Shown: positions 23,687-46,809 of the stretch, in pieces
How the letters are laid out: each line of letters starts with the position of its first letter
Numbering within the stretch: position 1 is the stretch's first letter
Translations under genes and position numbers: made by a program
The notes under the pieces: generated by a model
Seen by the model: the letters and a program-made list of their open reading frames with translations, nothing else
What the model was told of the DNA's origin: nothing
Database searches by the model: none
Sequence record: LR756501.1
DNA: 64,000 nucleotides
Direction: 5' to 3' (one strand)

Positions 23687-23735
23687 TTTCAGGCTACACG
23701 TATTTGATCATTATATAGTAACTGCTGTGTATCTC
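23687..23735 (-). ncRNA. ACAGCA-stem element overlapping the DUF2828 stop codon
   Basis: AGATAC-ACAGCAG...GTGTAGCCTGAAA; TACAC/GTGTA pairing; degenerate member of the family. Confidence 0.5.
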
Positions 23736-25171
23736 TCACCGTCAATGACTTTCATCATCAATTCGTAAGGAGTTTCTTTCTTAGGTTCGACCTTTACTTC
23801 ATCTTGAATTTCTTCTCCCTGAAGAATAGCCTTCAAACCACTTGGGCTGAAACCCGATACAAGACCAACATTTTCGTCAAATGCTGATGCTGTTACTTTG
23901 TCCTCTGCTGCTCTAAGGTTCCAGAAGATGATTCTTGGAATCTTATATCCAGCTGCAGCGTAATGAGCTTTCATCATTTCGTAGGCGTTTGCGTTGTAGC
24001 AAGCTTTCGAAGGATCAAACTGCATATCTGATAAGATCAAGATTACTGTTGGCATTTCTGCTTCAGAAATTTTGTTCTCAATTGCTTTGTTAAGCAATAG
24101 TTCAAACGCTGCTTCAAGGTTTGTAGTCCCCTTCCATTCTACTCCTCTGATAGCACGAATCCTTTCGGCGATGCTACCTTGTAAGTACATCATCTTTGGA
24201 TGAGTATGGAAAGTCATGAAAGCGTCCTTGAAAATGCTTTCGTTTCTTTCAGAAATATAAAGACCAAGTGACCAACCCGCTCTCGCTGGTAATCCGCCAT
24301 AGAATTCCATAGAACCCGATGTATCAACCATTGGAAGCAACCTTTCGGTTGATCCTTCCATGTAGTTTGGCAACGAGTACCATTGTGCTTCAATAGCTAA
24401 ATTATCAAATTCTGTCCTAGCTCTTAGGAAAGCGTCGTAAAGTTGGTATGGGTAGATAGCGCTTGCGCACATCTTAGCAACACCACTCTTTACATTTGCG
24501 ATGTATTCTGCGAACCTCCCAGAATCTTTCTTGTAGAAAGCTTTTCTGTACTTGTTCATAGCTACAGAAGGAACGTGTTCGTAGTTAATGCCTTCAAATT
24601 GCTTTGCGCACATTAACTGCTCAACAGTCTGTGATAGCGATACTATCATCTTTCTGTAATCCTTTGGTGTTAAACCAAGAGCCTTACGAACGGTGTTCGC
24701 AACACTTCCCTTTCTTGGCAACCATTTTCCAAGCAGACCGTCTTTACTCTCTAAACCTTGTGCAATCAAAGGCATGTAAATGTCTTTGTTGAGGTGGAAC
24801 AAGTCGTCCCATCTTCCGTATTCTGGAATAAGGTTGATATTCTTTTTCAAATATCCGAGGTAATACTTTTCAAGATAGCTTAAACATACCCTGAAGAACT
24901 TACGTTCTCCAGCTCCACCACGTACGTCTCTCGTCCAGAACATAAGTTTAAGAGCGGTCAAAGGGTCTTCAGCCAAAGCTTTTTGGAACAATCCTTCAAT
25001 TTGGGCGTCTGTCCAATGACGGGCAGCACCTGCCATGAAATACATATCAACGCAAGCGTTTAAGCTGGTTGTGTTGGTTGGCATACCTTTCTCTGTGAAG
25101 GTATCATTTTGTCTTGCGCCATTTACTAATCTTGATGGTGATCCTGCTGGTTTTGTGATTCTGTTTGCCAT
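23711..25171 (-). CDS. DUF2828 family protein (TROVE/Ro60-like helical domain plus vWA)
   Basis: RDVRGGAGERK, EYGRWDDL, GKWLPR, VPSVAM, MIDAS VDTSGSM, LSDMQFD, IIFWNLR, VSGFSP. Confidence 0.9.
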   Translation of the reverse strand: MANRITKPAGSPSRLVNGARQNDTFTEKGMPTNTTSLNACVDMYFMAGAARHWTDAQIEGLFQKALAEDPLTALKLMFWTRDVRGGAGERKFFRVCLSYLEKYYLGYLKKNINLIPEYGRWDDLFHLNKDIYMPLIAQGLESKDGLLGKWLPRKGSVANTVRKALGLTPKDYRKMIVSLSQTVEQLMCAKQFEGINYEHVPSVAMNKYRKAFYKKDSGRFAEYIANVKSGVAKMCASAIYPYQLYDAFLRARTEFDNLAIEAQWYSLPNYMEGSTERLLPMVDTSGSMEFYGGLPARAGWSLGLYISERNESIFKDAFMTFHTHPKMMYLQGSIAERIRAIRGVEWKGTTNLEAAFELLLNKAIENKISEAEMPTVILILSDMQFDPSKACYNANAYEMMKAHYAAAGYKIPRIIFWNLRAAEDKVTASAFDENVGLVSGFSPSGLKAILQGEEIQDEVKVEPKKETPYELMMKVIDGERYTAVTI

Positions 25172-25188
25172 AATTTTTCGTTTTGTTT

Positions 25189-25225
25189 TTGCAGAAAACT
25201 CTGTTAAGTTTGCTGTTCGTTTTCT
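25189..25225 (-). ncRNA. ACAGCAA-stem element in the DUF2828 5' UTR
   Basis: AGAAAAC-GAACAGCAA-ACTTAACAGA-GTTTTCT-GCAAA; perfect 7-bp stem. Confidence 0.7.
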
Positions 25226-25386
25226 TCTAATTCTATTTCTTCATCTACCCAAAAGTATTTATCTCTGGGACAATAACCCTTTGATTTATACTTGGTTTCT
25301 ACTTCACTTTGGGCTTTTCTTTTACTATTTCTACCCTCCTGATAAACCTTATCTTTGTGGGTATATTTCCTATGAGTCTTAGCCAT
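25204..25386 (-). CDS. small basic hypothetical protein
   Basis: 60-aa K/R-rich ORF between rtcB and DUF2828. Confidence 0.6.
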   Translation of the reverse strand: MAKTHRKYTHKDKVYQEGRNSKRKAQSEVETKYKSKGYCPRDKYFWVDEEIELEENEQQT

Positions 25387-25387
25387 T

Positions 25388-26428
25388 TTAAATTTCTGTA
25401 AATTTAACTGTTACAATAGGTTTAGTTTGAGTTACTTTTTTAAGAAATGGTTGATCTTTTAAAAGAGTGTCTGTGCTTTTGTAAGCGAAGTCGAACTCTT
25501 GTAAGTAACCATTTGGGAATTTTCCATCTCTTCCCAACATTTCTACGAAATTTTGCTCATATATTTTCTTTTCTTTTTTCTTTAATGAGTGCCAGTGTTT
25601 CAGAGTATCAGTTCTGCTGAGTTTTCTCCCAGCTCCGTGTGCACACGACCAAAGGTTTTCACTCATATCAACCATCGGTTTTGGTGCCACTATTAAAGTT
25701 CCTCTAGTCATTGATAACGGAATAGCGACTTGAGTTCCATCTAATACTGTTGCTCCTTTTCTGTGAATAGCTTTCTTACCATCTACTGTGAAAACATTGT
25801 GAATTGAATCATTCACTTCGTAATTCACTTTATTGATATAACCATTGTGAATAAGGAATTCAAAAGTTTTTGTTACAAATTGTAATCTTCTTGATGTTCC
25901 AGAATTAACAACCTTTGAATATTTTTCATTTAATTCATCAGTCCACATTTCAATAGGTAAACTGTTTCCTTTTACTCCTTCATCAAAGTTGAAATCATCT
26001 ATCAATTTTAAGAAATATTGATACATATAAATTCCAAGATTTCTTGTCCCTGTGTGGCAGATAATATAAGTATAATCATCGTCACCGTCTTCAATTGAGA
26101 GGAAGTGATTTCCTCCACCAAGTCCTTCATCTGTGAATGTTTGACTTACTTTGTTAAATGCGTTATAGTGTTCAAATTTATTAAAAGGTTTTCTCCAAGC
26201 TTTTGAAGGGAATCTTAAAAACATAACACCACATCCAACGTCTTTACCTGTAACAAGAGGGAAGAATTTATCGGTTGAGGAAAATGTAACTCCAACAGGA
26301 ATAGCTCTCTCTGAACAGTAGTGAATATCAGGGAAAACGCAGATTTCGTCCATCTCATTTTCTGTTGCCAGTATGAGGTCGGTTGCGTTTTTTTCTATTT
26401 CGTCTTTATTACAAAAATACTTAATCAT
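25388..26428 (-). CDS. rtcB: RtcB family RNA 3'-phosphate/5'-OH ligase (compact)
   Basis: PDIH, GKDVGCG, GGGNHF, HTGTR, HN, HRKGAT, HGAGR. Confidence 0.9.
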   Translation of the reverse strand: MIKYFCNKDEIEKNATDLILATENEMDEICVFPDIHYCSERAIPVGVTFSSTDKFFPLVTGKDVGCGVMFLRFPSKAWRKPFNKFEHYNAFNKVSQTFTDEGLGGGNHFLSIEDGDDDYTYIICHTGTRNLGIYMYQYFLKLIDDFNFDEGVKGNSLPIEMWTDELNEKYSKVVNSGTSRRLQFVTKTFEFLIHNGYINKVNYEVNDSIHNVFTVDGKKAIHRKGATVLDGTQVAIPLSMTRGTLIVAPKPMVDMSENLWSCAHGAGRKLSRTDTLKHWHSLKKKEKKIYEQNFVEMLGRDGKFPNGYLQEFDFAYKSTDTLLKDQPFLKKVTQTKPIVTVKFTEI

Positions 26429-26438
26429 AGTACCCTCC

Positions 26439-26555
26439 TTACCCTTGTCTCTGTTTGAACTTAGGGTTCTTTTTACATATTACATACATAACACCGTGAC
26501 GTTTCACGATCTTACAATCTTCACTTCTTTTCTTAATTGATGCTCTTACTTTCAT
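26439..26555 (-). CDS. rpmJ: 50S ribosomal protein bL36
   Basis: [38 protein letters not shown] (38 aa); AGGAGGT SD just upstream of ATG 26555. Confidence 0.95.
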
Positions 26556-26566
26556 TTTATACCTCC

Positions 26567-26662
26567 TTAGAAAAATTTTGCGCCGTTTAATATTAAAATA
26601 ACTGTTATCACAATTACTATAATAACACCAACGCTCCACTGTCCTTTTTCTTTTTCGTTCAT
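26567..26662 (-). CDS. small single-pass membrane peptide (31 aa, not in ORF track)
   Basis: Manual translation [31 protein letters not shown]. Confidence 0.55.
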
Positions 26663-26664
26663 TT

Positions 26665-26856
26665 TTATTCTTTATCAAATGGTTTATACTCTTCCCATCC
26701 CATTAATTCGTGATGTTGTCTCATACAATCTTCCCAATCAATCCCCTCAATGGTTCTTATAATTTTAGCATCATCACCAACCCAAATTTTTGTGTTAGGA
26801 TCATTTTCTGTAACAACTGATACAGAAACTTTATCTTGCCAAACTTCTACTTTCAT
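26665..26856 (-). CDS. hypothetical protein
   Basis: 63-aa ORF in operon. Confidence 0.6.
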
Positions 26857-27149
26857 TCGTCTAAAATTTTAATAACTTTACCATATATTGCTTTGGTCCA
26901 TCCATTGATGCCACCGCGATTATTACCAATCAAAACTCCTCTTTTAGGATTGGTTGCTTTTACTAAGTGTGTGTAATAGTTACCTCTGACTTTACAGAAA
27001 ACTATATCACCATCTTTTACCTTAGTCCAGTCTGTCGGTTCTAATACGACAGGTTGCTTAGACTTTAGAATTGGTAACATCGAGTTACCTGCTTCCTTAG
27101 ATGTGATGGTTTCACCACTTAGTAATTTTTCAACCTTCCAATTTAACAT
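26853..27149 (-). CDS. S24/S26 peptidase-like small protein
   Basis: GNSMLPILKS, GDIVFCK, HLVK. Confidence 0.55.
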   Translation of the reverse strand: MLNWKVEKLLSGETITSKEAGNSMLPILKSKQPVVLEPTDWTKVKDGDIVFCKVRGNYYTHLVKATNPKRGVLIGNNRGGINGWTKAIYGKVIKILDE

Positions 27150-27247
27150 AATTTTAATCTCCTCTAAAACTTACAGTTTAAAAGATGTACAGGAATAACA
27201 ACATACGGAGATTTCGTGCCTGAAACGGCATTCATTAAAGAAAAAAA

Positions 27248-27302
27248 TCTCGGATTACGTTTGTTGCTGTTGCCTATAGCTTTTTATTGCTGTAAGTAAT
27301 CC
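27248..27302 (-). ncRNA. ACAGCAA-stem element with two motif copies
   Basis: GGATTAC-TTACAGCAA...CAACAGCAA...GTAATCC-GAGA; perfect 7-bp stem. Confidence 0.7.
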
Positions 27303-27313
27303 ATAAAAACTTT

Positions 27314-27349
27314 TCCAGGATACAGACCGTTTTTTCGAAAACGGTATCT
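27314..27349 (-). ncRNA. variant stem element lacking ACAGCAA
   Basis: AGATAC-CGTTTTCGAAAAAACG-GTCT-GTATCC-TGGAAA. Confidence 0.4.
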
Positions 27350-27384
27350 TAAAAATATTCACATTTTTTGTCTTTTGTGGAAAC

Positions 27385-27467
27385 CTAGGTGAACCTTAAA
27401 ACCACTTCGTAAGTATAGCCGGAGCTATTCTTTTTTCATATTTCTATGATTTGCTGTATGTAACCTT
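27385..27467 (-). ncRNA. ACAGCAA-stem element
   Basis: AGGTTAC-ATACAGCAA...GTTCACCT; imperfect stem. Confidence 0.55.
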
Positions 27468-27545
27468 CAAGTTTAATATTGTAGTATATAAATTATCTAT
27501 TAGTATTACGTATATATTTAGTCAAAAATGTCATTTTTTTCCATT

Positions 27546-27755
27546 TTAGTTGAAAGTCTTGAACAACTGACCACTTCTGTTGACTAAAACCACTTTACCA
27601 TTACTTAACTGAATCTGAACGGTTCCGTCGTCACCCATAAAATCAGCCCTAGTGGCGTCACCTTTGGTGTAGTAAGTAAAGGCTTTCTGCCCACTCATGT
27701 TGTAAAGGAAAACATTTCCTTCAACTAATCTAACGATTCCTACTGGATTTGCCAT
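27546..27755 (-). CDS. hypothetical protein
   Basis: 69-aa ORF. Confidence 0.55.
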   Translation of the reverse strand: MANPVGIVRLVEGNVFLYNMSGQKAFTYYTKGDATRADFMGDDGTVQIQLSNGKVVLVNRSGQLFKTFN

Positions 27756-27922
27756 TTTGTGTAAAGTTTAATAGATTTATATTAATCGATTTATAAAAAG
27801 TTTAAAAAATTATAAATAAAGCTACGATTATTCCTATTACTACGAATGATATAATTGTGGACTTCACAGAAGAAAACATTACATCACCAAGATTTTCTAT
27901 GATATGTGATATTATTTCCATA

Positions 27923-28180
27923 TTACCAAACGTTTTCAATATTTTTCCAAAAATCTTCAAATGATTCTTTTCCGTAAGTCCATTTGAAACCGTCTTTATG
28001 TCCTAAAAATGTTCCACCTGTGAAATCTCTGAATTTGGCAGACACATTATAAAAACAACCATTTATAACACGATCTCCAATTCTAATAAATATCTGAGTA
28101 ACCCCACCATCTGTGAATTCAACATAATAACCCATCTGTTTGAAAAAATCACCGACTACAATTCTTTTTTCTTTCCGCAT
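27923..28180 (-). CDS. hypothetical protein
   Basis: 85-aa ORF downstream of a TATCTTTG promoter. Confidence 0.55.
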   Translation of the reverse strand: MRKEKRIVVGDFFKQMGYYVEFTDGGVTQIFIRIGDRVINGCFYNVSAKFRDFTGGTFLGHKDGFKWTYGKESFEDFWKNIENVW

Positions 28181-28206
28181 GGTTTTTCATTTTTTAGTTT
28201 ACTATA

Positions 28207-28214
28207 CAAAGATA
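28207..28214 (-). promoter_or_regulatory. Bacteroidota sigma70-type -7 element TAnnTTTG (also 33189-33196, 35136-35143, 45912-45919, 50611-50618, 56933-56940)
   Basis: TATCTTTG/TATATTTG/TAAATTTG in intergenic DNA upstream of minus-strand genes. Confidence 0.65.
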
Positions 28215-28283
28215 CGACAAAATTCGTTAATAACAAAACTTATCTCATTAATTTTTCTATAATGAAAGTAAAAATAATTTTAA

Positions 28284-29486
<1,203 letters not shown>

Positions 29487-29725
29487 GAAAGCCATAACTC
29501 TTTTATGGTCCCAGCCGCGAATAAGTTTATAACAATATTCTTTAGATAAACCTTGTCTTAAACGAAAACGGTAAGCGTAGTATTTTAAAGGATTAAAGAA
29601 GATCCAACTTGTGATTTCCAGATTTGTTTTCATGTTTCTCATTTTTATGTGAATGTATTTGATGAAAATGCACAAATAAAAATATTGATGTGCAAAAGAT
29701 TAATATTAATAAAGTTTCTATCATA

Positions 29726-31078
29726 TTAGTAAATTAAATTATTGTTTCTATATCCACTAGATGTATTTAACCACCAGTCTTGATATTGTGTTCCGCTTGA
29801 TGTTACCCAATCTCTGAAATGTAAATAAGCATTTGATATATCTGCATTTTCAACTGGATAATTGAATGTGCCATAAATATCTAATCCCCAAGGTAAATTT
29901 GTCGCTGATTTATAATATTTTACACCTATTTGGGTATCGTCGTCTCCAGTTCTAAAAAATGAAGGATCAACTAGTTCTGTTGGTGTATAGTTAGGTAAAT
30001 GAACTTCGTGTCCTCTTACTCCACTTACTACGATAAATGGGTTCCAATTTTGAATACTCAACTCTTGTAAAGTAACAGTATTGACGTCAGAAAATTTAAT
30101 ATGAACGTTAAAAGTCTTCCAAGGACAACTTGGACCGCCTTTTATAGTATTCCACTCAGCCATAAACTTATGACTATCATCAAAGAGTATAAATGTCGCT
30201 TTTGTTGGATTTCCCGATTCAGTGCCATTTGAGTTAATACTATAACCAGTTTGATCTCCAACACCAGTTACACTAACAATTGAAGAAGGTGTTGTTGTTA
30301 ATTGAAAACCAAATCCGTTATGCATTCCAGCACCATTTGCCCTTACAACAAAAGTAGCATATATATCTTTCACTTTATGAGATTGTGTATAAGAAACAAT
30401 TTTAAATTTATATCCCATTACTAAATCATTCATATCGTAATCTCCGTAATTGGGCCAAAGGTCTTCAAATGCTAATGTTGAGGTATCAGAAGCTGGGTAA
30501 TAATTTATAGTAGTATCTGGCGGTGTTGGTGGAACGTAAACATTACAATTATTAGAAGGATCAGAAACATTAACTCCTGGAATTATGATGTTGTCTAACT
30601 GTCCTCTTGAATTACCAGCACCATTACTAGTCCATTGCCATTTCACTTTATGAATACCCGTTGTGATATTAACAAAACTTGTATGTGTTGGAGTGCTATT
30701 AGTATAAACACCTGTCCATAAAAGAGTTTGTACAGAACTTTGATTTACTATATAAACCTTCAATGTTCTTTGTCCATCAAATGATGGTACAGCGTGATCA
30801 AAAACTATATTACCTGCTGATAAATTTGTCCAAGGACTTTCTAAAACACAACTCGTTGTGGCTCCAAGATTATCTGTTTCCATTACAAAAGTACCGTTAA
30901 ATCCTTGATTTGCATTTGCCGTTACTTTAGTGCCAAAATATGTACTATTTGGACCTATACCCCAGCAGTGATTATAATAGTATAACCAATTACCGTCTTC
31001 AAAATTGTTTGTTACTGATTGGCCGAAACCAAATAAACTTACTAAACTTAATAAGGTTATTAATAATATCTTTTTCAT
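29726..31078 (-). CDS. exported LruC domain (DUF4842-like) protein
   Basis: Signal peptide; TLAFEDLWPNYGDYDMNDLV, HNGFG, GHEVHL, LPWGL. Confidence 0.85.
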   Translation of the reverse strand: MKKILLITLLSLVSLFGFGQSVTNNFEDGNWLYYYNHCWGIGPNSTYFGTKVTANANQGFNGTFVMETDNLGATTSCVLESPWTNLSAGNIVFDHAVPSFDGQRTLKVYIVNQSSVQTLLWTGVYTNSTPTHTSFVNITTGIHKVKWQWTSNGAGNSRGQLDNIIIPGVNVSDPSNNCNVYVPPTPPDTTINYYPASDTSTLAFEDLWPNYGDYDMNDLVMGYKFKIVSYTQSHKVKDIYATFVVRANGAGMHNGFGFQLTTTPSSIVSVTGVGDQTGYSINSNGTESGNPTKATFILFDDSHKFMAEWNTIKGGPSCPWKTFNVHIKFSDVNTVTLQELSIQNWNPFIVVSGVRGHEVHLPNYTPTELVDPSFFRTGDDDTQIGVKYYKSATNLPWGLDIYGTFNYPVENADISNAYLHFRDWVTSSGTQYQDWWLNTSSGYRNNNLIY

Positions 31079-31092
31079 GTTTTTATTTTTAT

Positions 31093-31470
31093 TTATTGTA
31101 TAATATAATCAAATGTTATTGTATTTGAAAGTAAATCAATTGATTGGATTTTACTACCGTAAACCAAAGTGACTTTGGTTTCTGTTGAAGGAACTGCAAA
31201 TTTTAAAGTGTAATCATTAGCCATAAATAATAAATCTTTGTAATATGTTGTATCACCAACAGATGATTTAACATAAAGAGTATTAATTATAGAAGGATTA
31301 ATGTCTTTCATTCCAACTATATTTAACGTAATTTCTTTTGACGTTTTCCAATCAAAAGTAGGACTAGCAACCAATTCCTTTGTAGTATTTGTATCTGGCT
31401 CAACAGTTTCAAATTTTCTACAAGAAGAAAACGATACTAACAATAAAATAATAAATAATAGTTTTTTCAT
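31093..31470 (-). CDS. lipoprotein
   Basis: MKKLLFIILLLVSFSSC lipobox; FDWKT motif. Confidence 0.75.
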   Translation of the reverse strand: MKKLLFIILLLVSFSSCRKFETVEPDTNTTKELVASPTFDWKTSKEITLNIVGMKDINPSIINTLYVKSSVGDTTYYKDLLFMANDYTLKFAVPSTETKVTLVYGSKIQSIDLLSNTITFDYIIQ

Positions 31471-31531
31471 TTCAACGTGTTTTAGTTTCTATTATATATT
31501 AATAGAATAACACGGAGTTTAGGGGCAAAAC

Positions 31532-31569
31532 AAAAACCTGGAATGTAACTATCTACATTCCAGGTTTTT
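31532..31569. terminator. intrinsic terminator
   Basis: AAAAACCTGGAATGTA-ACTATC-TACATTCCAGGTTTTT, 16-bp stem. Confidence 0.85.
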
Positions 31570-31622
31570 ATGTAAAGATTAATAAGTAAGTGCCACTACT
31601 AAGTTAGTAAGTGTGTCCTTTT

Positions 31623-32484: not shown

Positions 32485-32487
32485 TAA

Positions 32488-34195: not shown

Positions 34196-34201
34196 TTTAT
34201 T

Positions 34202-39188: not shown

Positions 39189-39335
39189 TAGAAATAGATA
39201 TAGTATAATATTTTATATCATTTGGAGAACCGAAATTCACACATCCTCCTACATTGGTTTCACCCAGTACAACCTTCTTATCGTCGGGTAAATCCTTTAT
39301 GAGATCTTTAATCTCTTTTATTGTTGAAACTCTAT

Positions 39336-39899
39336 TCATACGTTCTCAATTAATAATCTTCTTTGAATAATCAAATCTGCCAATTCCCTTACAAAATCAA
39401 GATTGGAAATAGAAAGAGCCATCGGAATAATATACTGTTCAGTCTGATCAAGATATTGTGCTATCTTACCAGATGTATGTGTATCTAAGTGCATATCAGT
39501 AAGATTACTGATTCTATCAGCACATTTCAAAATTTTAGCCCTCTCTGAACCAGTTTCTAAAATTCTTTTAAGATAGTCAGCCTTAGGCTCTTCTTTACTT
39601 TTAGATACTTCTTTCACCAAATCGATAACTGCCTGACCGTCACCATCTAAATTACGAATAGCATCCATTTGCTCCAATCCCCAATCTTCAAAGAGGTCGT
39701 GAAGTAAAGACGCTTTAAGTAAAACAGAATCATCGAAGTACTTGTAGTCTAACAAGATACCTAATGTTGCGAATTGGTGTCTGAATTGATTTCCACCACA
39801 TTTACGCTTCACGCCAATAAGGGTTGTTGCCTTAATGATGTAAGGAGCTAATACGAATTTGTCGAAAAATTGGTCCATATCTTTTGGATTTAAACTCAA
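39336..39899 (-). CDS. stand-alone HD-domain hydrolase, SpoT/Mesh1 (p)ppGpp hydrolase-like
   Basis: R..G.QFRH, ASLLHDLFED, LVKEVSK, KCADRISNL. Confidence 0.8.
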   Translation of the reverse strand: MSLNPKDMDQFFDKFVLAPYIIKATTLIGVKRKCGGNQFRHQFATLGILLDYKYFDDSVLLKASLLHDLFEDWGLEQMDAIRNLDGDGQAVIDLVKEVSKSKEEPKADYLKRILETGSERAKILKCADRISNLTDMHLDTHTSGKIAQYLDQTEQYIIPMALSISNLDFVRELADLIIQRRLLIENV

Positions 39900-39927
39900 A
39901 GGTAAGAAAAATTCTTCAAATAAAAAA

Positions 39928-40287
39928 TTATAAATTTAAAATATAATTGAAATAAAGCCTATCGTAATGACCGTTTTCTTTATTCTTAATTATTCTTTTT
40001 CTTACGGTATTTTCGAAATCTTTAAGGAGAGGTTCTGGTATCTTTATATTCTTTCTTTCGAAATCTTCTAATATGTCTTTCATCCTGAACTCACCATCTC
40101 CTATACCTTCACTCCACATTTTTACGTGGAGTCCCCAGCTTTTCTTTCCTATTATAACTCCTTTGAATATATTTGGTTGATTGGTAATTGTATCTTTTTT
40201 ACCGTTTTCAAAGTCTTTAAAACATTCTTTCGAACTTTTCCCTTTTGGATCACTGTGAACAATAACATCACACCCACAGAAATCCAA
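39928..40287 (-). CDS. hypothetical protein
   Basis: 119-aa ORF. Confidence 0.5.
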   Translation of the reverse strand: MDFCGCDVIVHSDPKGKSSKECFKDFENGKKDTITNQPNIFKGVIIGKKSWGLHVKMWSEGIGDGEFRMKDILEDFERKNIKIPEPLLKDFENTVRKRIIKNKENGHYDRLYFNYILNL

Positions 40288-40379
40288 TAACTTGGATCTG
40301 TAGGATTTTAAAAAGAATTCAAATACTTCATTGAATCCTTTTGAATATTTTGTGCTTTTGGCATATAATTACCCTTTCT

Positions 40380-40703
40380 TTATTTTTTTAAATTATCATT
40401 CGGATCTTCTTCACCGTCCCAAATCAAATTATCTGATGAAATAGGACCATACATACTCTCACATTTTATACCAACATAACCCATCCATTTGAGATTTAGT
40501 ATTTTAGTCATTCCTTCCTTTTGTAAGTAAATGACTCCTCTATCAACATCTTTAAATGTAAGTGGTTCTCTATCAATATAATCTATTGTAGTTTTTGTAT
40601 CATCTTCGTCAATATAAGATGTAATATCAGCAGATGAAGGAATACCAAGTATAGTCCTTGTTATTCTATTATTCTTCAGGTCTTTGAATAGTACCGTTTT
40701 CAT
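40380..40703 (-). CDS. hypothetical protein
   Basis: 107-aa ORF. Confidence 0.5.
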   Translation of the reverse strand: MKTVLFKDLKNNRITRTILGIPSSADITSYIDEDDTKTTIDYIDREPLTFKDVDRGVIYLQKEGMTKILNLKWMGYVGIKCESMYGPISSDNLIWDGEEDPNDNLKK

Positions 40704-40837
40704 TTTGTTTCTGTTTCAAATATTTTTTAACTTTCTTTCTAAATGACGCACTTGGCCAACCGTTTACATCAGCGTGGTTTTTAAATCTTTTCACCATTTC
40801 GAATAACAGTTCACTATCAATATCTTCCTGTTTCATT

Positions 40838-41398
40838 TTACTTATTTTTAGTTAACTTAATTAATTCACTCATAAATGGCATTTTTTTCAATTTATCTCT
40901 ATATTTTCTTATTTGAAAATGATGCCAAACACCTATCGATAAAGCCCATCTATATTCTGAATCTTCAAAATATTTTGTTAGATTGCCACTTGTCTTTAAT
41001 TTATCGTTAAACTCGTTGATGATAATTCCACCTTTTTCGTAATTATCGACTAGTGTTACCCAATCTTTTACTTGTCTTCCTGTTACTGGACTTATGACGT
41101 AATTGAATTCTTCGACTGTTTCTAAATCTTCTTCTACTATTGTTTTATCGTAGAAAGGAAGAGCTGCACCGTGTAAATATTCAGAGTAAGATTTAATTCT
41201 CTTATCTGTAATGGTTTCGTCTTTTTGAACTTCGATAATGAAAGCAAAGAGTTCTTTAAAGGGAATCTCTTCACTCTCATCGTCGAATCTTTTATCTAGA
41301 ATAGATGCGTAATTTTCAAGTTTTAAGATTAAATCAGCTTCATATTCTGTGCTACCTTGTGATATAAGGTATTCTCTTTTGTTTGTGTTGTAATTCAT
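40838..41398 (-). CDS. hypothetical protein
   Basis: 186-aa ORF. Confidence 0.55.
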   Translation of the reverse strand: MNYNTNKREYLISQGSTEYEADLILKLENYASILDKRFDDESEEIPFKELFAFIIEVQKDETITDKRIKSYSEYLHGAALPFYDKTIVEEDLETVEEFNYVISPVTGRQVKDWVTLVDNYEKGGIIINEFNDKLKTSGNLTKYFEDSEYRWALSIGVWHHFQIRKYRDKLKKMPFMSELIKLTKNK

Positions 41399-41404
41399 CT
41401 TGTT

Positions 41405-42085
41405 TTAATTTAAAAGTTCTAACTTACCTTTTTGTATATCTTTCCATCTACAAGATTTTCCTGTAATATGGTCAGTTATTATATCATCTTTTATACGATA
41501 AGTTCGTCTTTTATTTCCTCTTCCAAATGTTCCAACTTGATCGTTTCTTCTATCTTCAACTTTATTATAGTGTTTTTCTTCTTCTATTTTTTTAAGTTTT
41601 TCAGATAGCCTTTTATAAGCAAGTTCCTCATTTTTAGCTTGGTACCTTGTCTCTTCACATCTTACCATTATACCTGTTGGTTTATGAGTAAGTACGACAC
41701 ATGAGTGGATTCTATTTACATTTTGTCCACCTTTGCCTCTACTACATGTATAGGTTTTTGATATTTCGTCAAGATTTAAGTTGAAATTTACTTTGTCTTC
41801 TGGGTTCATTATCGCCACTTTGACGATACTTGTTTGAGTTCTACCGTTTCTCTCTGTTGGGGGTACTCTTATGAAGCAGTGTGATCCACTTTCGTTTGCG
41901 TAAAATTTGTTTACGCTATCACCTTCTATTCATATCGAAGCAAAACCGTCTTTGACTTCAACTACTCTTCAATTGAAATTTTGGTTTTTTGCTGATCTGA
42001 TATAAATATCCATAAGATCTACCACTAATAGTTTTGAATCATTACCTCCCTCGGAAGCCATGATTTCGATTTGAATCTTTTTCAT
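41405..42085 (-). CDS. RF1-like peptide chain release factor (domain-1-less) with two in-frame UGA codons (41969-41971, 41930-41932)
   Basis: Single frame MKKIQIEIMASEGGNDSK...NFN*RVVEVKDGFASI*IEGD...ESGSHCFIRVPPTERNGRTQTS...SRGKGGQNVN...RTY; ORF track shows only the last 137 aa. Confidence 0.85.
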
Positions 42086-42110
42086 TTTATTTATTTTTAT
42101 TTTTTATTAA

Positions 42111-42329
42111 TTAATTACAGGCGTTCCAGCCATTTCTATCTAATTTCTTTAACATTTTATAAGTGTTATCATCCACTATATCTAATTCGCTGTAAGTTGT
42201 TTTACTACTAATTACAACAAATCCTTTCTTCTTCTTTGCTCCTGAATGTTCCACACAAGTCTCAGCGTTTGGTAACGCCTTAATTCTGCCTTCTGGAATT
42301 TCTTCACCGCAAACTTTACAATACTTCAT
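42111..42329 (-). CDS. TraR/DksA C4-type zinc finger protein
   Basis: YCKVCGEEIPEGRIKALPNAETCVEH. Confidence 0.8.
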   Translation of the reverse strand: MKYCKVCGEEIPEGRIKALPNAETCVEHSGAKKKKGFVVISSKTTYSELDIVDDNTYKMLKKLDRNGWNACN

Positions 42330-42351
42330 TAATTCAATTATTTATTTTTTG

Positions 42352-42424
42352 AGCCGGTGAGAGGACTTGAACCTCCAACATCTACTTTACGAAAGTAACG
42401 TTCTCCCAATTGAACTACACCGGC
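42352..42424 (-). tRNA. tRNA-Thr(CGT), isolated from the array
   Basis: Full cloverleaf: GCCGGTG/CACCGGC, loop TT-CGT-AA, TTCAAGT. Confidence 0.93.
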
Positions 42425-42431
42425 TTAATTC

Positions 42432-42770
42432 TTAGAAATCAATATTAAGATAATCACCGAACCATCTACTCTTCTTAACCACTTTTATAATTGGTTTCTC
42501 CATCCATTGTTTTCTGTTTTTAGAAACCAATTTCCAGCTTGGGTGACGAACTTTTTTTGGAGATGGTGTCCAAATAGTCAAATTTGGACTTGGTGAATAT
42601 CTCCAGAATTTTAAAGTCCCGTAGGATTTTCTTTCGTCATTTTCTCCTCTGTGATAACCACAACGTGAACAGTGAATCTCACCTTTTTGTTCGAGATAAA
42701 TCTTTCTTGAACGGTTATAGACATATCTGTTATCAGTAATGTCCATTTCTACTTTACATTTGTAACTCAT
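42432..42770 (-). CDS. hypothetical protein
   Basis: 112-aa ORF, CSRCGYHRGEN...PSWKLVSK.RKQW. Confidence 0.6.
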   Translation of the reverse strand: MSYKCKVEMDITDNRYVYNRSRKIYLEQKGEIHCSRCGYHRGENDERKSYGTLKFWRYSPSPNLTIWTPSPKKVRHPSWKLVSKNRKQWMEKPIIKVVKKSRWFGDYLNIDF

Positions 42771-42854
42771 AGGTTTTTCGATTAGTTTTTAATACTTACC
42801 GAAAAACCTCTCCTTTCTTATTCATAACTGTATATATTTTATTTTAAAGTTATA

Positions 42855-43760
42855 TTACATCCATTTCTTAAATTTGAAATACGAAAACATTCCAATTATC
42901 ATAGCTAACATTAAACCACCTAGATACATATAAAATTGATCGTGATCCTGAAAAGGTATTTTAATATTCATACCGTAAAGATTAGCTAAGAACGATATAG
43001 GTAACAAAATTGAAGATACTAAAGCTAAAATCTTCATCACTTCATTCGTCTTATTCACCTGCAAAGAGTCAAATGTTGTGCTGTAACCTTTAATAAGTTC
43101 ACCAGCGTCTTCAACAGTGTCCCATATATTCTGGTAATAGTCATGTATATTACCCCAATAATTTCCCATATCTTCAGCAAATCCTCTAATCGCCCCATTA
43201 GTTAGTTTACTAAAAATAGCCAACTGTGGTTTGAACATTGTATTCATCACAATAACATTTTTTCTAGTAATACTAATATGTTCAATTATCTTTTCAGCTC
43301 TTTTACCAAAGATAGATTTACCACATTTATCAACCTCTTCGTCAATCCTATCAACTAATTGCTGAGTAGCCTTCATAACTTTATCAAGTAAAGTATAGAG
43401 AAGCATATCAGAACTTGTTACTACCATTCTTTTATCAGGTGTTAAGGATTTTTCCTTATCAAATTCTTGAGTAAACAACCAATGTGTTTTACCAATAGTT
43501 ACAAGAAAATTGTTACCCCAAAATATTTTTACCTCTTTAATATCTACTACTGTTCCAGATTTATCTATATACGGAAAATGTAAATTTAAGAAGTAGTAAC
43601 CGTCATATGTATCAACCTTCGGATGAAGACTATTTGTTTTACAGTCTTCCATAGCAAGAGGGTGAAAATTATAAGCGTCTTTTATTTCTGTAAATTCTGC
43701 GTTAGTTGGTTTAACAAGATGTTCCCACGTAACACCGCCATAGTTTATTCTTCCAATCAT
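42855..43760 (-). CDS. corA: CorA family Mg2+/Co2+ transporter
   Basis: FHPLAMED, PKVD.Y, NEVMKIL, LYGMN, two C-terminal TM helices. Confidence 0.92.
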   Translation of the reverse strand: MIGRINYGGVTWEHLVKPTNAEFTEIKDAYNFHPLAMEDCKTNSLHPKVDTYDGYYFLNLHFPYIDKSGTVVDIKEVKIFWGNNFLVTIGKTHWLFTQEFDKEKSLTPDKRMVVTSSDMLLYTLLDKVMKATQQLVDRIDEEVDKCGKSIFGKRAEKIIEHISITRKNVIVMNTMFKPQLAIFSKLTNGAIRGFAEDMGNYWGNIHDYYQNIWDTVEDAGELIKGYSTTFDSLQVNKTNEVMKILALVSSILLPISFLANLYGMNIKIPFQDHDQFYMYLGGLMLAMIIGMFSYFKFKKWM

Positions 43761-43769
43761 ATCTTTTTA

Positions 43770-44306
43770 TTAATGTTTAAGTGGTCTATGATAATTTGGT
43801 GCTGGCGATGGATGATCTTTTTTTATTATTCTATTAACTCCCTCTATAATAAATAAAGTGTTTTTAAATCTATCGTTTCCTGATTCACCGAATGCTGCTA
43901 ATGTAGAATACCATTTATGATTTAATTCATTCGAATATTTAACTAAACATACAATAGTATCGTCTTTTCTAGCTGATGGACACATAGATGAAGCTAATAA
44001 ATAGTCTGGTTCAGGAGTTGGAAAAGATGTGCTTTTAGCTCTTAAATAAAATACAGTTTCTTCACCGTGTCTGCCCTCCAATTTATAGACTTCATTTGTA
44101 ACTAACATCTTCACGTTAATTTCTCTAATGTTTTCATATTTCATCTTATCATGAAAAGCACAAGTGGTCATCATTGTAGAAAACATCAAAAACATGAAAC
44201 TTAACATTATCACAGGAAAGAAATCTCTTCTCTTTTTGGGCACCACAGGAGGAGCGTCGTTCCAATCCTCTTCCCCGTAGGGATCTATAACTTTTTTATT
44301 ATCCAT
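43770..44306 (-). CDS. membrane-anchored hypothetical protein with N-terminal DPYGEEDW motif
   Basis: IDPYGEEDWND then hydrophobic segment. Confidence 0.6.
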   Translation of the reverse strand: MDNKKVIDPYGEEDWNDAPPVVPKKRRDFFPVIMLSFMFLMFSTMMTTCAFHDKMKYENIREINVKMLVTNEVYKLEGRHGEETVFYLRAKSTSFPTPEPDYLLASSMCPSARKDDTIVCLVKYSNELNHKWYSTLAAFGESGNDRFKNTLFIIEGVNRIIKKDHPSPAPNYHRPLKH

Positions 44307-44529
44307 ATATGCTATATCCTTGAATAATATAAACTTTTACTGGTAAAGGGTTTACTTTTTTAGTATTAAACCATCTATTACGACCATTGACCCTATCAAT
44401 CAATAATTGTTTAGTTAAATAAACACCCTTGTAAAATTCAAAAGCTTGTTGTTCAGTTTCAAATTCTGGAACCACATCAACATATTTACTAAGACCTAGA
44501 TATACGTTCTTTATTTTCATTATACTCAA
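44299..44529 (-). CDS. hypothetical protein
   Basis: 76-aa ORF. Confidence 0.5.
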   Translation of the reverse strand: MSIMKIKNVYLGLSKYVDVVPEFETEQQAFEFYKGVYLTKQLLIDRVNGRNRWFNTKKVNPLPVKVYIIQGYSIYG

Positions 44530-44683
44530 TAAACTGCTGTTCCCTAATCTTATATTGAAGTCCTTTCATTTCACTAAGAACTTCTTCCAAATAGTCGAAA
44601 TCCATCGCGTAATGATCACCGATGAATTTCATTTGGAATATCACTTCCTTGCATAAAGCCTCATACCTGTCAAATATATCCAT
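44489..44683 (-). CDS. hypothetical protein
   Basis: 64-aa ORF. Confidence 0.45.
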   Translation of the reverse strand: MDIFDRYEALCKEVIFQMKFIGDHYAMDFDYLEEVLSEMKGLQYKIREQQFIEYNENKERISRS

Positions 44684-45497
44684 AATTTATGTAATTTAGA
44701 AATTTTTGTATTTCTTTTTCTAAATATTCTTTATTCACTTCATTTATTGGATTCTTCCATTTTATCCTATAAACCTTTATTCCAACATCTTCTAACAATT
44801 TATCCCTCACTATGTCCTTTTCTTTTCTATCTTTGTAAGAGTGTTGTTTACCATCAATTTCCAAATCAATTTTCTTATCCTCGAAATAAAAGTCTAAAAA
44901 ATAATTACTTATATCATTTAATCCCAAATCCCTTTTACTTATTACAAAGTTTTGTTTGTATTCCAATTTGTTATTTTTCAATACTTCAATGAAAAACTTT
45001 TCTGGGTATGATATTATATTCCTACTTGTCCAACCTTTATGTGTTCCGTTTCTGACTTTTTCTTTAACATTCAAACTTAGATTTTTTTTCATTCCTAATT
45101 TTGAACAAATATCACTACAATATTCTTGTTGTGATAATTTTCCATTTTCAATTCTTGTAACTATAAAAACATCGCCACACTCTTTACAATTTCTTTTATA
45201 TTCTTTAAGTGCTTTTTTGCCTCCTCTATCTATTCTTTTTAAACTTAAACTTGTTTTTGATTTTTGTTCATCAGTGATTATTCTATTTTTATTATTATAA
45301 GAAGCCGAACAAGAACTAGAACAAAATTTATTTTTTCTTTTATCGTAAGGCAATGAATTATTACAATTCAAACATAAATTGGGGTTATTATTATATTTTT
45401 CAACCCTTTTGTTTTTAATTTCTTGTATTTTTCTATTACCCAATACAGAAGCTTTTTTAGCATTTTCTATATGATATTCAGATCCAATATAATTCAT
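44670..45497 (-). CDS. freestanding endonuclease, DUF559/Vsr-like PD-(D/E)XK with Cys-rich zinc modules (putative homing endonuclease)
   Basis: CLNC...FCSSSC, CKEC...YCSDIC; SYPEK, YFLDF, IDLEIDGKQH, RD..L...G.KV.RI.W. Confidence 0.8.
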   Translation of the reverse strand: MNYIGSEYHIENAKKASVLGNRKIQEIKNKRVEKYNNNPNLCLNCNNSLPYDKRKNKFCSSSCSASYNNKNRIITDEQKSKTSLSLKRIDRGGKKALKEYKRNCKECGDVFIVTRIENGKLSQQEYCSDICSKLGMKKNLSLNVKEKVRNGTHKGWTSRNIISYPEKFFIEVLKNNKLEYKQNFVISKRDLGLNDISNYFLDFYFEDKKIDLEIDGKQHSYKDRKEKDIVRDKLLEDVGIKVYRIKWKNPINEVNKEYLEKEIQKFLNYINYGYI

Positions 45498-45565
45498 ATA
45501 AACTTTTATATTTATATATAAACATAAAAAAGTCAGTTTTTTCTGTTTTGAACCTAAATCCTTGT

Positions 45566-45634
45566 AGCAGATGTCGGACTTGAACCGCTACCCTTGCTCC
45601 CAAAGCAAGTATGTTACCATTACACCACATCCGC
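45566..45634 (-). tRNA. tRNA-Pro(TGG), T-arm one base short
   Basis: GCGGATG/CATCTGC, CTTGC-TT-TGG-GA-GCAAG. Confidence 0.7.
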
Positions 45635-45642
45635 TGTTTTTG

Positions 45643-45715
45643 TGACCCCAGTTGGATTCAAACCAACGACTTTCACTTTAGAAGAGTGACACTCTATTCG
45701 CTGAGTTATGAGGCC
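45643..45715 (-). tRNA. tRNA-Arg(TCT)
   Basis: Full cloverleaf, TCACT-CT-TCT-AA-AGTGA. Confidence 0.92.
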
Positions 45716-45801
45716 GTTATTATTCTATAAATATATATAAATTAAGCGTTACACTATTTCGACAATCATTTGGCTTTTACCCACACACCCCTTTTTGAGT
45801 A

Positions 45802-45868
45802 GGGCGGAGAAAGATTCGGACTTTCATTTCCTTGCTAGTGAGGCAGGCTGGGTTTCCATTATCCAACT
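45802..45868 (-). pseudogene. degenerate tRNA-Val(CAC)-like remnant
   Basis: D, anticodon (CT-CAC-TA) and T arms recognisable; acceptor strands do not pair. Confidence 0.3.
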
Positions 45869-45965
45869 TGATTTAGCGTCATTTCCTTTCTTTAATTTTA
45901 GTTTCTTATTACAAATATACGACAAAGTTTTAATATAAAAAAATCAATTTTGATTTATTATTTTG

Positions 45966-46042
45966 TGACCCAGAGGGGATTCGAACCCATATTTTCATCC
46001 GTTATGCACGTGGAGTTTAGAAGACTCTGCCATTACAGGGCC
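45966..46042 (-). ncRNA. atypical tRNA-Arg(TCT)-like RNA: no D-arm, long variable insert
   Basis: GGCCCTG/CTGGGTC acceptor, GAGT-CT-TCT-AA-ACTC, about 22-nt insert, TTCGAAT T-loop. Confidence 0.6.
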
Positions 46043-46045
46043 ATA

Positions 46046-46115
46046 TACAGAATGCTTTTTTTCTACAAATTACAAGTTTGTTGCTTATTAAAGCTTTTGG
46101 TTGCTGTGAGCATTC
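46046..46115 (-). ncRNA. ACAGCAA-stem element
   Basis: GAATGC-TCACAGCAA...GCATTC-TGTA. Confidence 0.7.
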
Positions 46116-46117
46116 AT

Positions 46118-46202
46118 TGGAGCGGCTAGTGAGAATCGAACTCACATCCTCGGTTTGGAAGACCGACATAATCTGCTTTTGGCTCCATTATACGATAGCC
46201 GC
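46118..46202 (-). tRNA. tRNA-Gly(TCC) with about 12-nt D-loop insertion
   Basis: GCGGCTA/TAGCCGC-T-CCA, TCGGT-CT-TCC-AA-ACCGA. Confidence 0.8.
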
Positions 46203-46323
46203 GTAAGTTGGGCGTTCTCTTTTATCCTTCGTCTGTTGGAGCACTAAGTAAAATCCTAATGGCAACACGTTGATGGGAAGGGCGAGAACATTGATGGTTT
46301 CACCTATTATACCAACCACCCTG

Positions 46324-46422
46324 AGCGAAGAAAAGGATTCGAACCTTTGACTACCCACCAAATTCATCTGCACTTAAACAGTATGGCTGATCATGGCAAT
46401 TTTCCCACTAAACTACCTCCGC
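46324..46422 (-). ncRNA. tRNA-like RNA with 33-nt expanded anticodon loop
   Basis: Acceptor GCGGAGG/TCTTCGC, D and T arms normal, TGCCA/TGGTG enclosing 33 nt. Confidence 0.65.
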
Positions 46423-46430
46423 AATATTTG

Positions 46431-46502
46431 AGCGAATAGTGGGACTCAAACCCACGACCCTTTGCTTGGGAAGCAAATATTCTATCACTGAACTATACTC
46501 GC
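46431..46502 (-). tRNA. tRNA-Gly(CCC)
   Basis: Full cloverleaf, TTTGC-TT-CCC-AA-GCAAA, U73. Confidence 0.92.
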
Positions 46503-46506
46503 AATG

Positions 46507-46578
46507 AGCGAAAGAAGGGAATCGAACCCTCATATCCAGCTTGGAAGGCTGGAGTAATAGCCTTTATACTACTTTCGC
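46507..46578 (-). tRNA. tRNA-Gly(TCC)
   Basis: Full cloverleaf, CCAGC-CT-TCC-AA-GCTGG. Confidence 0.92.
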
Positions 46579-46582
46579 ATTG

Positions 46583-46654
46583 AGCAAGAGATGAGAATCG
46601 AACTCACATCCTCGGCTTGGCAAGCCGACGTACTAACCATTGTACTACTCCTGC
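46583..46654 (-). tRNA. tRNA-Gly(GCC)
   Basis: Full cloverleaf, TCGGC-TT-GCC-AA-GCCGA. Confidence 0.93.
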
Positions 46655-46658
46655 GTGT

Positions 46659-46717
46659 TACAGAATACTTTTTATTCACTTTTTGGAAGAAAGTTTTTTA
46701 TTTGCTGTAAGTATTCT
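46659..46717 (-). ncRNA. ACAGCAA-stem element
   Basis: AGAATAC-TTACAGCAA...GTATTCT-GTAA; perfect 7-bp stem. Confidence 0.7.
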
Positions 46718-46721
46718 TTGT

Positions 46722-46809
46722 TTTCAGATTACTATGTTGTGACGATTTGAACGCCTTAGAACAATTTTCAGTTGTTTTGTTTACCTTTTGGTTTTGCTGT
46801 GAGTAATCT
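46722..46809 (-). ncRNA. ACAGCAA-stem element
   Basis: AGATTAC-TCACAGCAA...GTAATCT-GAAAA; perfect 7-bp stem. Confidence 0.7.

Follow-up and report, generated by a model that had tools for sequence, protein, structure and literature searches.

What are the short hairpin elements that recur around a DUF2828 protein gene and among the tRNA genes of an unannotated phage genome? The window analyzed here is a 64,000-nt stretch that corresponds to bases 317061-381060 of LR756501.1, a 735,411-bp "uncultured phage" genome deposited without annotation, and the same sequence is found in LR756503.1. A sequence-only reading of the window had described at least seven minus-strand copies of an element in which a closing stem is followed by ACAGCA(A/G), and had proposed that these are noncanonical Y-like ligands or operator sites of the DUF2828 protein. 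We find that the stem-ACAGCAA elements form a real family of small viral RNAs, covarying, widespread, and not yet annotated, and that in phages and giant viruses they show a tight, directional linkage to DUF2828 genes.

A covarying family of viral RNA elements

A mechanical scan of the window (an arm of at least 6 nt, 0-3 nt, ACAGCA, at most 110 nt, then the reverse complement of the arm) returned five clean minus-strand hairpins at 46809-46726, 46717-46662, 46115-46050, 27302-27252, and 25225-25193, numbered elements 1 to 5 below. Each had a perfect closing stem of 7-9 bp whose 5' arm was followed, after 0-2 nt, by ACAGCAA and a variable interior, and whose complementary arm was followed by a G. 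With filters off across 22-51 kb, a covariance model scored element 2 at 54.4 bits, element 3 at 51.8, element 1 at 40.4, element 4 at 39.5, and element 5 at 26.2, and the next best match reached 11.5 bits. ACAGCAA itself occurred 12 times in the window vs 5.2 +/- 2.1 times in shuffled sequence. Five of the seven copies first reported were therefore real (46809-46725, 46717-46661, 46116-46048, 27302-27251, and 25225-25192) and two lacked support: the copy placed at 23687-23735 had ACAGCAG without a complementary arm and gave no model match, and that at 27385-27467 had the motif between mismatched arms and scored 10.4 bits, which is the level of noise. Two supposed motif-less variants were unrelated hairpins, with 27314-27349 a plain hairpin and 48686-48726 giving no model match. 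What had been described as a "CTG" tail consisted of the last two bases of the stem plus a conserved unpaired G.

The whole 735-kb record, searched as 15 overlapping pieces that were not joined, contained only seven credible model matches. The two outside the window were a copy between tRNA genes at record positions 186393-186451 and a 144-nt copy at 194847-194990. The latter had T-arm-like and D-arm-like parts and was located just past a terminator and 5 nt before five tRNA-Leu genes. The family is thus rare and clustered in this genome, and it does not represent a general promoter or terminator signal.

An exact-pattern scan of IMG/VR, in which three stem pairs were forced, yielded 54 matches in 52 loci (individual loci are given L numbers below). 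About 42 of these had a complete 7-bp stem, and the roughly 12 matches without the full stem came from loci with few or no tRNAs. True pattern matches were nearly always in tRNA arrays and on the tRNA strand. A relaxed scan of the same loci recovered 82 distinct elements, whose stems came in more than 20 different sequences. The covariance model was built from 44 non-redundant viral copies preselected for ACAGCAA and at least 6 perfect pairs. In the alignment of these copies both sides had changed in 8/9 modelled pairs, doubly changed cells numbered 65 vs 13 in shuffles, and the covariation score of 0.52 (0.15 in shuffles) was reached by 0/500 shuffles. Since the 44 copies had been preselected for perfect pairs, the count was repeated on 64 independent copies from DUF2828 loci that were found by model score alone and stood outside model building. 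There, doubly changed cells numbered 117 vs 30 in shuffles, the first seven pairs were formed in nearly all cells, and the covariation score was 0.62 vs 0.19 in shuffles and at most 0.13 when the partner was slid. The stem covariation first claimed from the window copies was very strong in both of these separate sets.

The conserved handle comprised a 7-bp terminal helix, ACAGCAA right after the 5' arm, and an unpaired G right after the 3' arm. Pairs 8 and 9 were formed in only about half of the 64 copies, so we define the conserved helix as 7 bp. Its outer pair was A-U in 59/64 copies and its second pair G-C in 44/44 and 59/64 copies of the two sets, while the remaining pairs varied widely and covaried freely. 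ACAGCAA was invariant in the 44 array-type copies, which had been selected for it, and the first letter of the heptamer was variable in DUF2828-adjacent copies. The two letters before ACAGCAA were mostly T-T or T-C. Total length ranged from about 35 to 145 nt (mostly 50-70 nt) and interiors from 15 to 120 nt.

Linkage to DUF2828 genes and the predicted protein partner

The proposed tie to DUF2828 held across viruses. We retrieved 80 viral loci (1.41 Mb) purely by homology to the DUF2828 protein (42-97% identity; 402 relatives found), and the RNA model made 96 matches at E <= 1 in these loci, every one on the strand of the DUF2828 gene. Fifty-two matches lay within 700 nt of the gene, made up of 35/42 upstream and 17/54 downstream matches. 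They were spread over 36/80 loci, 31 of which had one scoring at least 30 bits. Far-downstream matches adjoined tRNA-Met genes. tRNAs were present in only 44/80 loci, and many loci with gene-adjacent elements were tRNA-free. In a control of 746 kb of bacterial and archaeal DNA preselected for half of the motif, the model made 16 matches, of which 11 fell in three contigs of metagenome-assembled genomes that are phage-like tRNA arrays.

The converse test gave the same association, with DUF2828 homologs beside the elements in loci found by the RNA pattern alone. In L031 the homolog had 38% identity and three tandem element copies upstream. More distant homologs were encoded in L048 (24% identity) and in L036 and L044 (26-27%, proteins of 613 and 625 aa). 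A gene for a mimivirus-type poly(A) polymerase is also present in L036, and L044 is labelled as a giant-virus bin; microsatellite-like repeats occurred beside the elements in L044. Similarity to the L044 protein alone led to two more loci with two or three elements each in the gap just upstream of the gene, one of which encodes a eukaryote-type topoisomerase IB and the other SET, TTL, and DNMK domains. In all, four giant-virus-type loci (L036, L044, L276, and L279) had DUF2828 proteins about 25% identical and two or three tandem elements upstream on the opposite strand.

By tblastn, the DUF2828 protein was found in at least 709 deposited phage genomes. Carriers include Felixounavirus, Listeria P100-like, Staphylococcus, Campylobacter, and mycobacteriophage groups, and giant viruses have the protein as well. 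We fetched eight cultured phages and found elements in seven (one weakly), with every match on the DUF2828 strand. Aeromonas phage LAh_9 had eight or nine tandem copies directly upstream of DUF2828. Two copies were located upstream of the gene in Campylobacter phage Los1 and one in Bacillus phage FADO. Listeria phage LMTA-148 also had two upstream copies; its tRNAs are located beyond these on the upstream side, and RtcB lies 1.3-2.6 kb downstream. Downstream of DUF2828 were three copies in Staphylococcus phage SEP9, directly adjacent, and three in the E. coli Felixounavirus HY02, among tRNAs, with the predicted RNAs at about 25512-26056 of NC_028872.1. Mycobacterium phage Nicholas gave weak matches only. 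None of these RNAs was annotated in the records examined. The annotated DUF2828 coding sequence of LAh_9 (MK838115.1; L272 3881-5377) starts 120 nt before the homology and overlaps two predicted elements, and the deposited start codon is probably too far upstream.

In the window, the DUF2828 and DUF7788 domains belong to one 486-aa protein (23711..25171, minus strand; Pfam and AlphaFold2) that falls in PHROG 850, "RNA-binding protein". An AlphaFold2 model from a 15-sequence alignment (mean predicted local distance difference test, pLDDT, 80; predicted template modelling score, pTM, 0.81) placed a helical-repeat domain before an alpha/beta von Willebrand factor A (vWA) domain. The comparison with Ro60 that had been suggested for this protein was borne out at the level of predicted structure. 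All ten best PDB matches of the model were Ro60/TROVE structures aligned over the full length (about 500-550 columns; E 2.7e-8 to 3e-6; TM 0.37-0.61), including Xenopus Ro60, Deinococcus Rsr, and the Ro60 of Thermus phage phiLo, and lower-ranked matches covered the vWA domain alone. The closest predicted viral structures came from a jumbo Acinetobacter phage, a pithovirus, a marseillevirus, and mimivirids including Cafeteria roenbergensis virus (CroV), and a Gordonia phage "Ro-like RNA binding protein" was also among the viral matches. DUF2828 proteins were previously called "mimiviral-like" in a preprint. We predict that the DUF2828/DUF7788 protein is a Ro60-like ring of helical repeats with a C-terminal vWA domain.

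Ro60 genes elsewhere are flanked by genes for their partner RNAs, including phiRo60 of Thermus phage phiLo with Yrl1 and Yrl2 (PMC4201824, PMC12135203), and for this reason we read the viral elements in the same way. It is probable, in our judgment, that they are small structured RNA genes or processed segments that serve as dedicated partners of the Ro60-like DUF2828/DUF7788 protein, as Y RNAs do for Ro60. The ligand or operator role first suggested for them is backed by the gene linkage, the wide range of viruses, and the predicted fold, from which we infer binding.

Several points weigh against such a partnership. No element match was found in 24/80 DUF2828 loci or in Vibrio phage K571 despite its DUF2828 gene, and elements in tRNA arrays often had no DUF2828 within the few kb available. 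Pfam assigned only DUF7788, DUF2828, and a weak VWA_2 to the protein, with no TROVE, and a profile search recovered no PDB sequence, a solved Ro60 included, even with E allowed to reach 10. Rfam Y RNA and YrlA families matched no element at gathering or E-value threshold, and the handle has no sequence feature of the Ro60-binding site in Y/YrlA RNAs. The evidence for the reading comes from sequence, synteny, and predicted fold. Finally, the leader copy just before the DUF2828 start codon could be purely cis-regulatory.

That last point concerns element 5 (25192..25225, minus strand; E=0.002 in 29 kb), a minimal copy in the DUF2828 5' leader that consists of a 7-bp stem closing a loop of 19 nt. 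It ends 20 nt before the start codon and overlaps the end of a 60-aa open reading frame (ORF). L072 and L073 have orthologous copies of 39 nt at the same place, 22-33 nt before DUF2828, and the stems of these show compensatory changes. Element 4 (27251..27302, minus strand) has a 7-bp stem, a second ACAGCAA in its interior, and a tail of G-A-G-A and a T-run; the S24-like/L36/RtcB/DUF2828 gene string begins about 100 nt further downstream. A similar element in L069 (9906-9967), with the same stem arms and the same G-A-G-A and T-run tail, was found 34 nt before DUF2828. The S24-like, L36, and RtcB genes separate element 4 from DUF2828, as if inserted into an older RNA-DUF2828 unit.

Such positions could also mean that the elements are cis-acting leader or operator hairpins, through which the translation, stability, or processing of the DUF2828 mRNA and of tRNA precursors is controlled. 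Copies ending 19-34 nt before the DUF2828 start (element 5 and those in L069, L070, L072, L073, and L074), array copies ending 4-7 nt before a tRNA, and the attenuator- or terminator-like T-run after element 4 all fit this explanation. We nevertheless judge it unlikely. Elements of the giant viruses are on the strand opposite DUF2828 and cannot be its leader, many copies follow the gene or form tandem sets of 2-9, the tandem array of L066 has no tRNA, and the lookalike Class I RNAs of Dictyostelium, treated below, are free and abundant (PMC7919456). Leader control is moreover compatible with the partner RNA reading, under which the minimal leader copy may well be an operator that mimics the free RNA.

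Transcription in the window is mostly on the minus strand. Upstream of the DUF2828 gene are an RtcB-type RNA ligase (346 aa, 25388..26428, minus strand) and, at 26439..27149 on the same strand, an S24-peptidase-like ORF (26853-27149), small ORFs, and a ribosomal protein L36 homolog (26439-26678; Pfam PF00444, E=1.3e-20, ORF residues 42-79) that sits within the S24-like/RtcB/DUF2828 string of this 735-kb phage. The 60-aa ORF of the string is of doubtful coding status. Beyond the operon, an adenylosuccinate synthetase (E=5e-137) and a DUF4842 protein are encoded at 28287-29486 (+) and 29726-31078 (-). RtcB, which the sequence-only reading had included in the association, is not a general partner: tblastn of the 80 DUF2828 loci recovered it in the closest relative only, and one Listeria phage is the single further case. 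Other RNA-repair neighbors were Rnl2 with a Band-7 protein in the Aeromonas phage and a nucleotidyltransferase in L100. The RNA-repair neighborhood is suggestive, and it is not universal.

Elements among tRNA genes

The presence of elements among the tRNAs had been noted from the sequence, and what had been missed is that the tRNA array is the main second niche of the family. Among 90 distinct elements, the next tRNA on the same strand began 4-7 nt past the conserved G in 29 and within 12 nt in 35, and the downstream tRNAs were of 19 different species. The window has 16-18 tRNA genes. Elements 1-3 lie in an array segment at 45564..47479 (minus strand) with tRNA-Pro, tRNA-Arg, three tRNA-Gly, tRNA-Ala, and unusual tRNA-like genes. 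Element 1 (46725..46809, minus strand) has an 8-bp terminal stem, ACAGCAA, and the G after the 3' arm. Its interior is cloverleaf-like and combines a D-like hairpin of 3 bp, a 5-bp stem capped by an anticodon-like loop of 7 nt, and a 4-bp stem whose loop resembles a T-loop. It is in tandem with element 2, and three tRNA-Gly genes follow downstream. Element 2 (46661..46717, minus strand) has a 9-bp terminal stem abutting ACAGCAA and an interior 5-bp stem with a 7-nt loop, and the G after its 3' arm is 6 nt upstream of tRNA-Gly(gcc), which starts at 46654. In element 3 (46048..46116, minus strand), which is flanked on both sides by tRNA-like genes, a terminal stem of 7 bp and ACAGCAA are accompanied by a 4-bp hairpin and by a 5-bp stem that ends in a 7-nt loop. 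The unusual tRNA-like genes beside these elements (46324-46422, 46127-46192, and 45966-46042, minus strand) were not called by ARAGORN. They comprise a gene whose anticodon-arm region carries an insert of 39 nt (38.6 bits), a gene in which the D region is enlarged (30.7 bits), and a third that falls below threshold (22.5 bits).

Interiors were rich in one tRNA-like part. An anticodon-arm-like hairpin, defined as a stem of at least 4 bp with a 7-nt loop of pyrimidine, T, three letters, purine, and any base, was found in 24/56 non-redundant interiors vs 2.6 +/- 1.4 (max 7) in shuffled interiors. Seven was the commonest interior loop length, and the middle three loop letters were most often TTT or TGT. 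Folding close to a cloverleaf, with D-loop-like and T-loop-like parts, was limited to element 1 and a few others. In two interiors (L066 489-586 and L022 3417-3506) a T-arm-like hairpin precedes a D-arm-like hairpin, which is a permuted order; a split or permuted tRNA or an intron was considered on this basis and set aside, as most copies have no such parts. Some contigs had tandem copies, including four or five in L066 (217-643) without a canonical tRNA. Neither ARAGORN nor the Rfam tRNA model called any element a tRNA, and the mitochondrial mode of ARAGORN, run as a test for armless tRNAs, gave no consistent calls, only an off-register piece of element 2.

The array niche raises the alternative that the elements are accessories of tRNA arrays unrelated to DUF2828, whether reduced tRNAs, decoys that present an anticodon arm to host anticodon nucleases, or hairpins for processing and spacing in tRNA precursors, with DUF2828 merely a frequent neighbor of the arrays. 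Five of the seven genome copies and most pattern-derived copies are in tRNA arrays on the tRNA strand, and the enrichment of anticodon-arm-like hairpins, along with some T-loop-like and D-loop-like parts, fits this view. Against this, elements flank DUF2828 in many loci that are tRNA-free within 10 kb and in the giant-virus loci, the tRNA callers find no tRNA, and the interiors are too variable for tRNAs, with conservation in the handle and not in the tRNA-like part. We regard this alternative as improbable. It is highly improbable that the elements act as DNA, as a dispersed inverted repeat like a miniature inverted-repeat transposable element, a recombination site, or a hairpin promoter: they have inverted-repeat arms and dispersed copies, and some begin transcription units (e.g., L004 45447-45590, right after a terminator), but the arms differ between copies and are complementary within them, which fits selection on a folded strand and not a shared transposon end, their orientation always follows the tRNAs or, in phages, DUF2828, the interior length varies from 15 to 120 nt, and scans for sigma-70-type promoters and terminators around them stayed at shuffle level.

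If the elements are partner RNAs of the DUF2828 protein, the handle would be the protein-binding site and the variable interior an effector module, which in about 40% of copies mimics an anticodon arm and in a few a nearly whole cloverleaf. Such an interior could offer a tRNA-like surface to tRNA enzymes or anticodon nucleases. Array copies would be freed by tRNA-processing enzymes, with the RNase P cut at the next tRNA setting the 3' side. Through the minimal copy in its leader, 20 nt before the start codon, the protein may sense or regulate its own mRNA, with this copy as an autoregulatory mimic. The resulting ribonucleoprotein (RNP) would act in RNA or tRNA surveillance or repair during infection, in keeping with its occasional neighbors RtcB, Rnl2, Band-7, and nucleotidyltransferase.

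Other tRNA-related genes were observed in the same collections. ARAGORN called tRNAs with a CUA anticodon ("tRNA-Pyl") near elements in seven DUF2828 loci (L076, L081, L082, L124, L135, L144, and L146); these are amber-suppressor tRNAs and suggest stop-codon reassignment in those phages. Transfer-messenger RNA (tmRNA) genes were also present in L022, L049, and L136. Weak matches to alpha-tmRNA, the two-piece form (E 0.005-0.04), overlapped DUF2828 3' ends in three related phage contigs (L091 2187-2343, L131 11261-11428, and L077 2664-2812) and may be another tRNA-like RNA or chance.

Known RNAs and implications

At Rfam gathering scores, only tRNAs, tmRNAs, and similar families matched, with no ribozymes and no Y RNAs. 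In E-value mode, the Dictyostelium Class I RNA family (RF01414) was the only non-tRNA family that matched the elements repeatedly and over the full length of its model. A match to an already characterized family had been named beforehand as a result that would speak against the proposal, and the outcome was divided, since RF01414 matches full-length yet below its gathering score. In the window it scored 37.1 bits on element 2 (46661-46716, E=2.9e-5), 25.7 on element 3, and 20.3 on element 1. Elsewhere it scored 33.3 bits in an unrelated phage (L091), on a copy next to DUF2828, and 29.6 and 28.0 bits in LAh_9. The gathering score of 41.5 was reached nowhere in the window, L066, L036, L022, L018, or L017, and the 37.1 bits of element 2 were the best score of all. 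Because RF01414 did not reach this score and the elements matched neither the Y RNA motif nor the Y RNA models, we place them as a Ro/Y-type variant.

The likeness to Y and YrlA RNAs lies in setting and design. In both systems small RNAs, often in tandem, are directly beside the gene of a ring-shaped protein with HEAT repeats and a vWA domain, a terminal stem formed from both ends carries a variable module, tRNA mimicry occurs, RtcB or other RNA-repair genes are sometimes near, and there are phage-encoded cases. The systems differ in the partner, which in the viruses is DUF2828 plus DUF7788 and not a TROVE-family ortholog of Ro60, and in the handle, a 7-bp helix with single-stranded ACAGCAA in the viral RNAs vs a bulged helix or CGAA-type motif (PMC4201824, PMC12135203). 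The viral RNAs are also shorter, and their tRNA-like part is the anticodon arm, whereas in YrlA it is the T and D arms.

Structured RNAs other than tRNAs have been seen in phage tRNA clusters before. Species 1 and 2 of phage T4 are small stable RNAs co-transcribed with the phage tRNA clusters. Like these and like ROOL and GOLLD RNAs, the elements are structured non-tRNA RNAs in phage tRNA arrays, presumably freed by tRNA-processing enzymes, but there is no similarity in sequence or structure, and ROOL and GOLLD are hundreds of nucleotides long. We know of no reported link of ROOL, GOLLD, or the T4 species to DUF2828. A near-threshold ROOL match (90 bits; gathering score 99.1) was found in Listeria phage LMTA-148 (NC_024787.1, L269 2466-3017), where it clusters with tRNAs, two stem-ACAGCAA elements, DUF2828, and RtcB.

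The viral stem-ACAGCAA RNAs look strikingly like Dictyostelium Class I RNAs. Class I RNAs are abundant, cytoplasmic, free RNAs of 42-65 nt (Kjellin 2021, PMC7919456) with a 6-bp terminal stem kept by compensatory changes, an 11-nt motif by the 5' arm, an invariant 5' G, and an otherwise variable sequence (PMC7919456). Both groups have T-T-A-C-A-G-C-A-A beside the 5' arm, a helix that starts with an invariant G, the end ...C-T-G, a variable A/T-rich interior, and a similar size of about 42-65 nt. D. discoideum DdR-21 reads GTTGAC-C-TTACAGCAA...GTCAAC-TG, and element 2 of the window reads (A)GAATAC-TTACAGCAA...GTATTC-TG. Feature by feature, the stem that joins the ends and keeps compensatory changes is present in the viral RNAs as a 7-bp helix (6 bp in Class I), and the invariant 5'-most G and conserved terminal residues correspond to the G-C second pair and the G after the 3' arm. 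In place of the 11-nt motif, the viral RNAs conserve ACAGCAA, for which the array copies were selected. A joint alignment of the viral and Class I sets left the first G and ACAGCAA invariant in both. An nhmmer search of 29 Class I RNAs of D. discoideum with a sequence-only phage profile yielded only weak local matches on the motif (E 0.003-0.014; the database was tiny, and the method is ill-suited to a 7-letter motif plus a helix).

There are also clear differences. In the viral RNAs one base fewer separates the stem from the motif, an extra outer A-U or G-C pair is usual, and the C-rich stretch before the 3' arm is absent. Dictyostelid Class I genes have a Dictyostelium upstream sequence element (DUSE) promoter about 60 nt upstream, and none is known for the viral elements, which are encoded by viruses of bacteria and protists. 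Class I genes are dispersed, whereas the viral elements cluster by DUF2828 or tRNAs. The known Class I binder is the RNA recognition motif (RRM) protein Rnp1A, with no Ro-like partner known, and three other proteins also bind these RNAs (PMC7919456). Published RNP1A work lists no DUF2828-type protein. Class I RNAs were reported to be restricted to Dictyostelia on the basis of searches that covered other eukaryotes and Myxococcus, not viruses (PMC7919456). We found no earlier description in the literature of stem-ACAGCAA motif RNAs with DUF2828, and no prior link of Class I RNAs or of the motif to phages or DUF2828.

A shared origin of the viral elements and Class I RNAs is a possibility. The wider proposal, that they are one ancient family whose universal partner is the Ro60-like DUF2828/DUF7788 protein, is one we hold tentatively and with somewhat more doubt than confidence. 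The full-length match to RF01414 below its threshold raises the interest of the elements rather than lowering it.

Ro60-Y RNA particles are a classic yet poorly understood case of RNA surveillance, and the viral elements point to a system that runs parallel to it and uses another protein family and another RNA handle. They offer an explanation for non-coding gaps beside "RNA-binding protein" genes and within phage tRNA arrays, and the well-studied phages among the carriers are tractable laboratory systems. They also give a testable lead toward the function of Dictyostelium Class I RNAs. If the unified family is true, some eukaryotes would have in common with tailed phages and giant viruses a second, unrecognized Ro/Y-type RNP system. 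The Class I RNAs, orphans for 20 years, would gain a candidate protein partner and a candidate part in the surveillance of RNA or tRNA. They could then no longer be seen as a dictyostelid invention tied to multicellularity, and transfer of RNA-plus-protein genes between viruses and amoebae would be implied.

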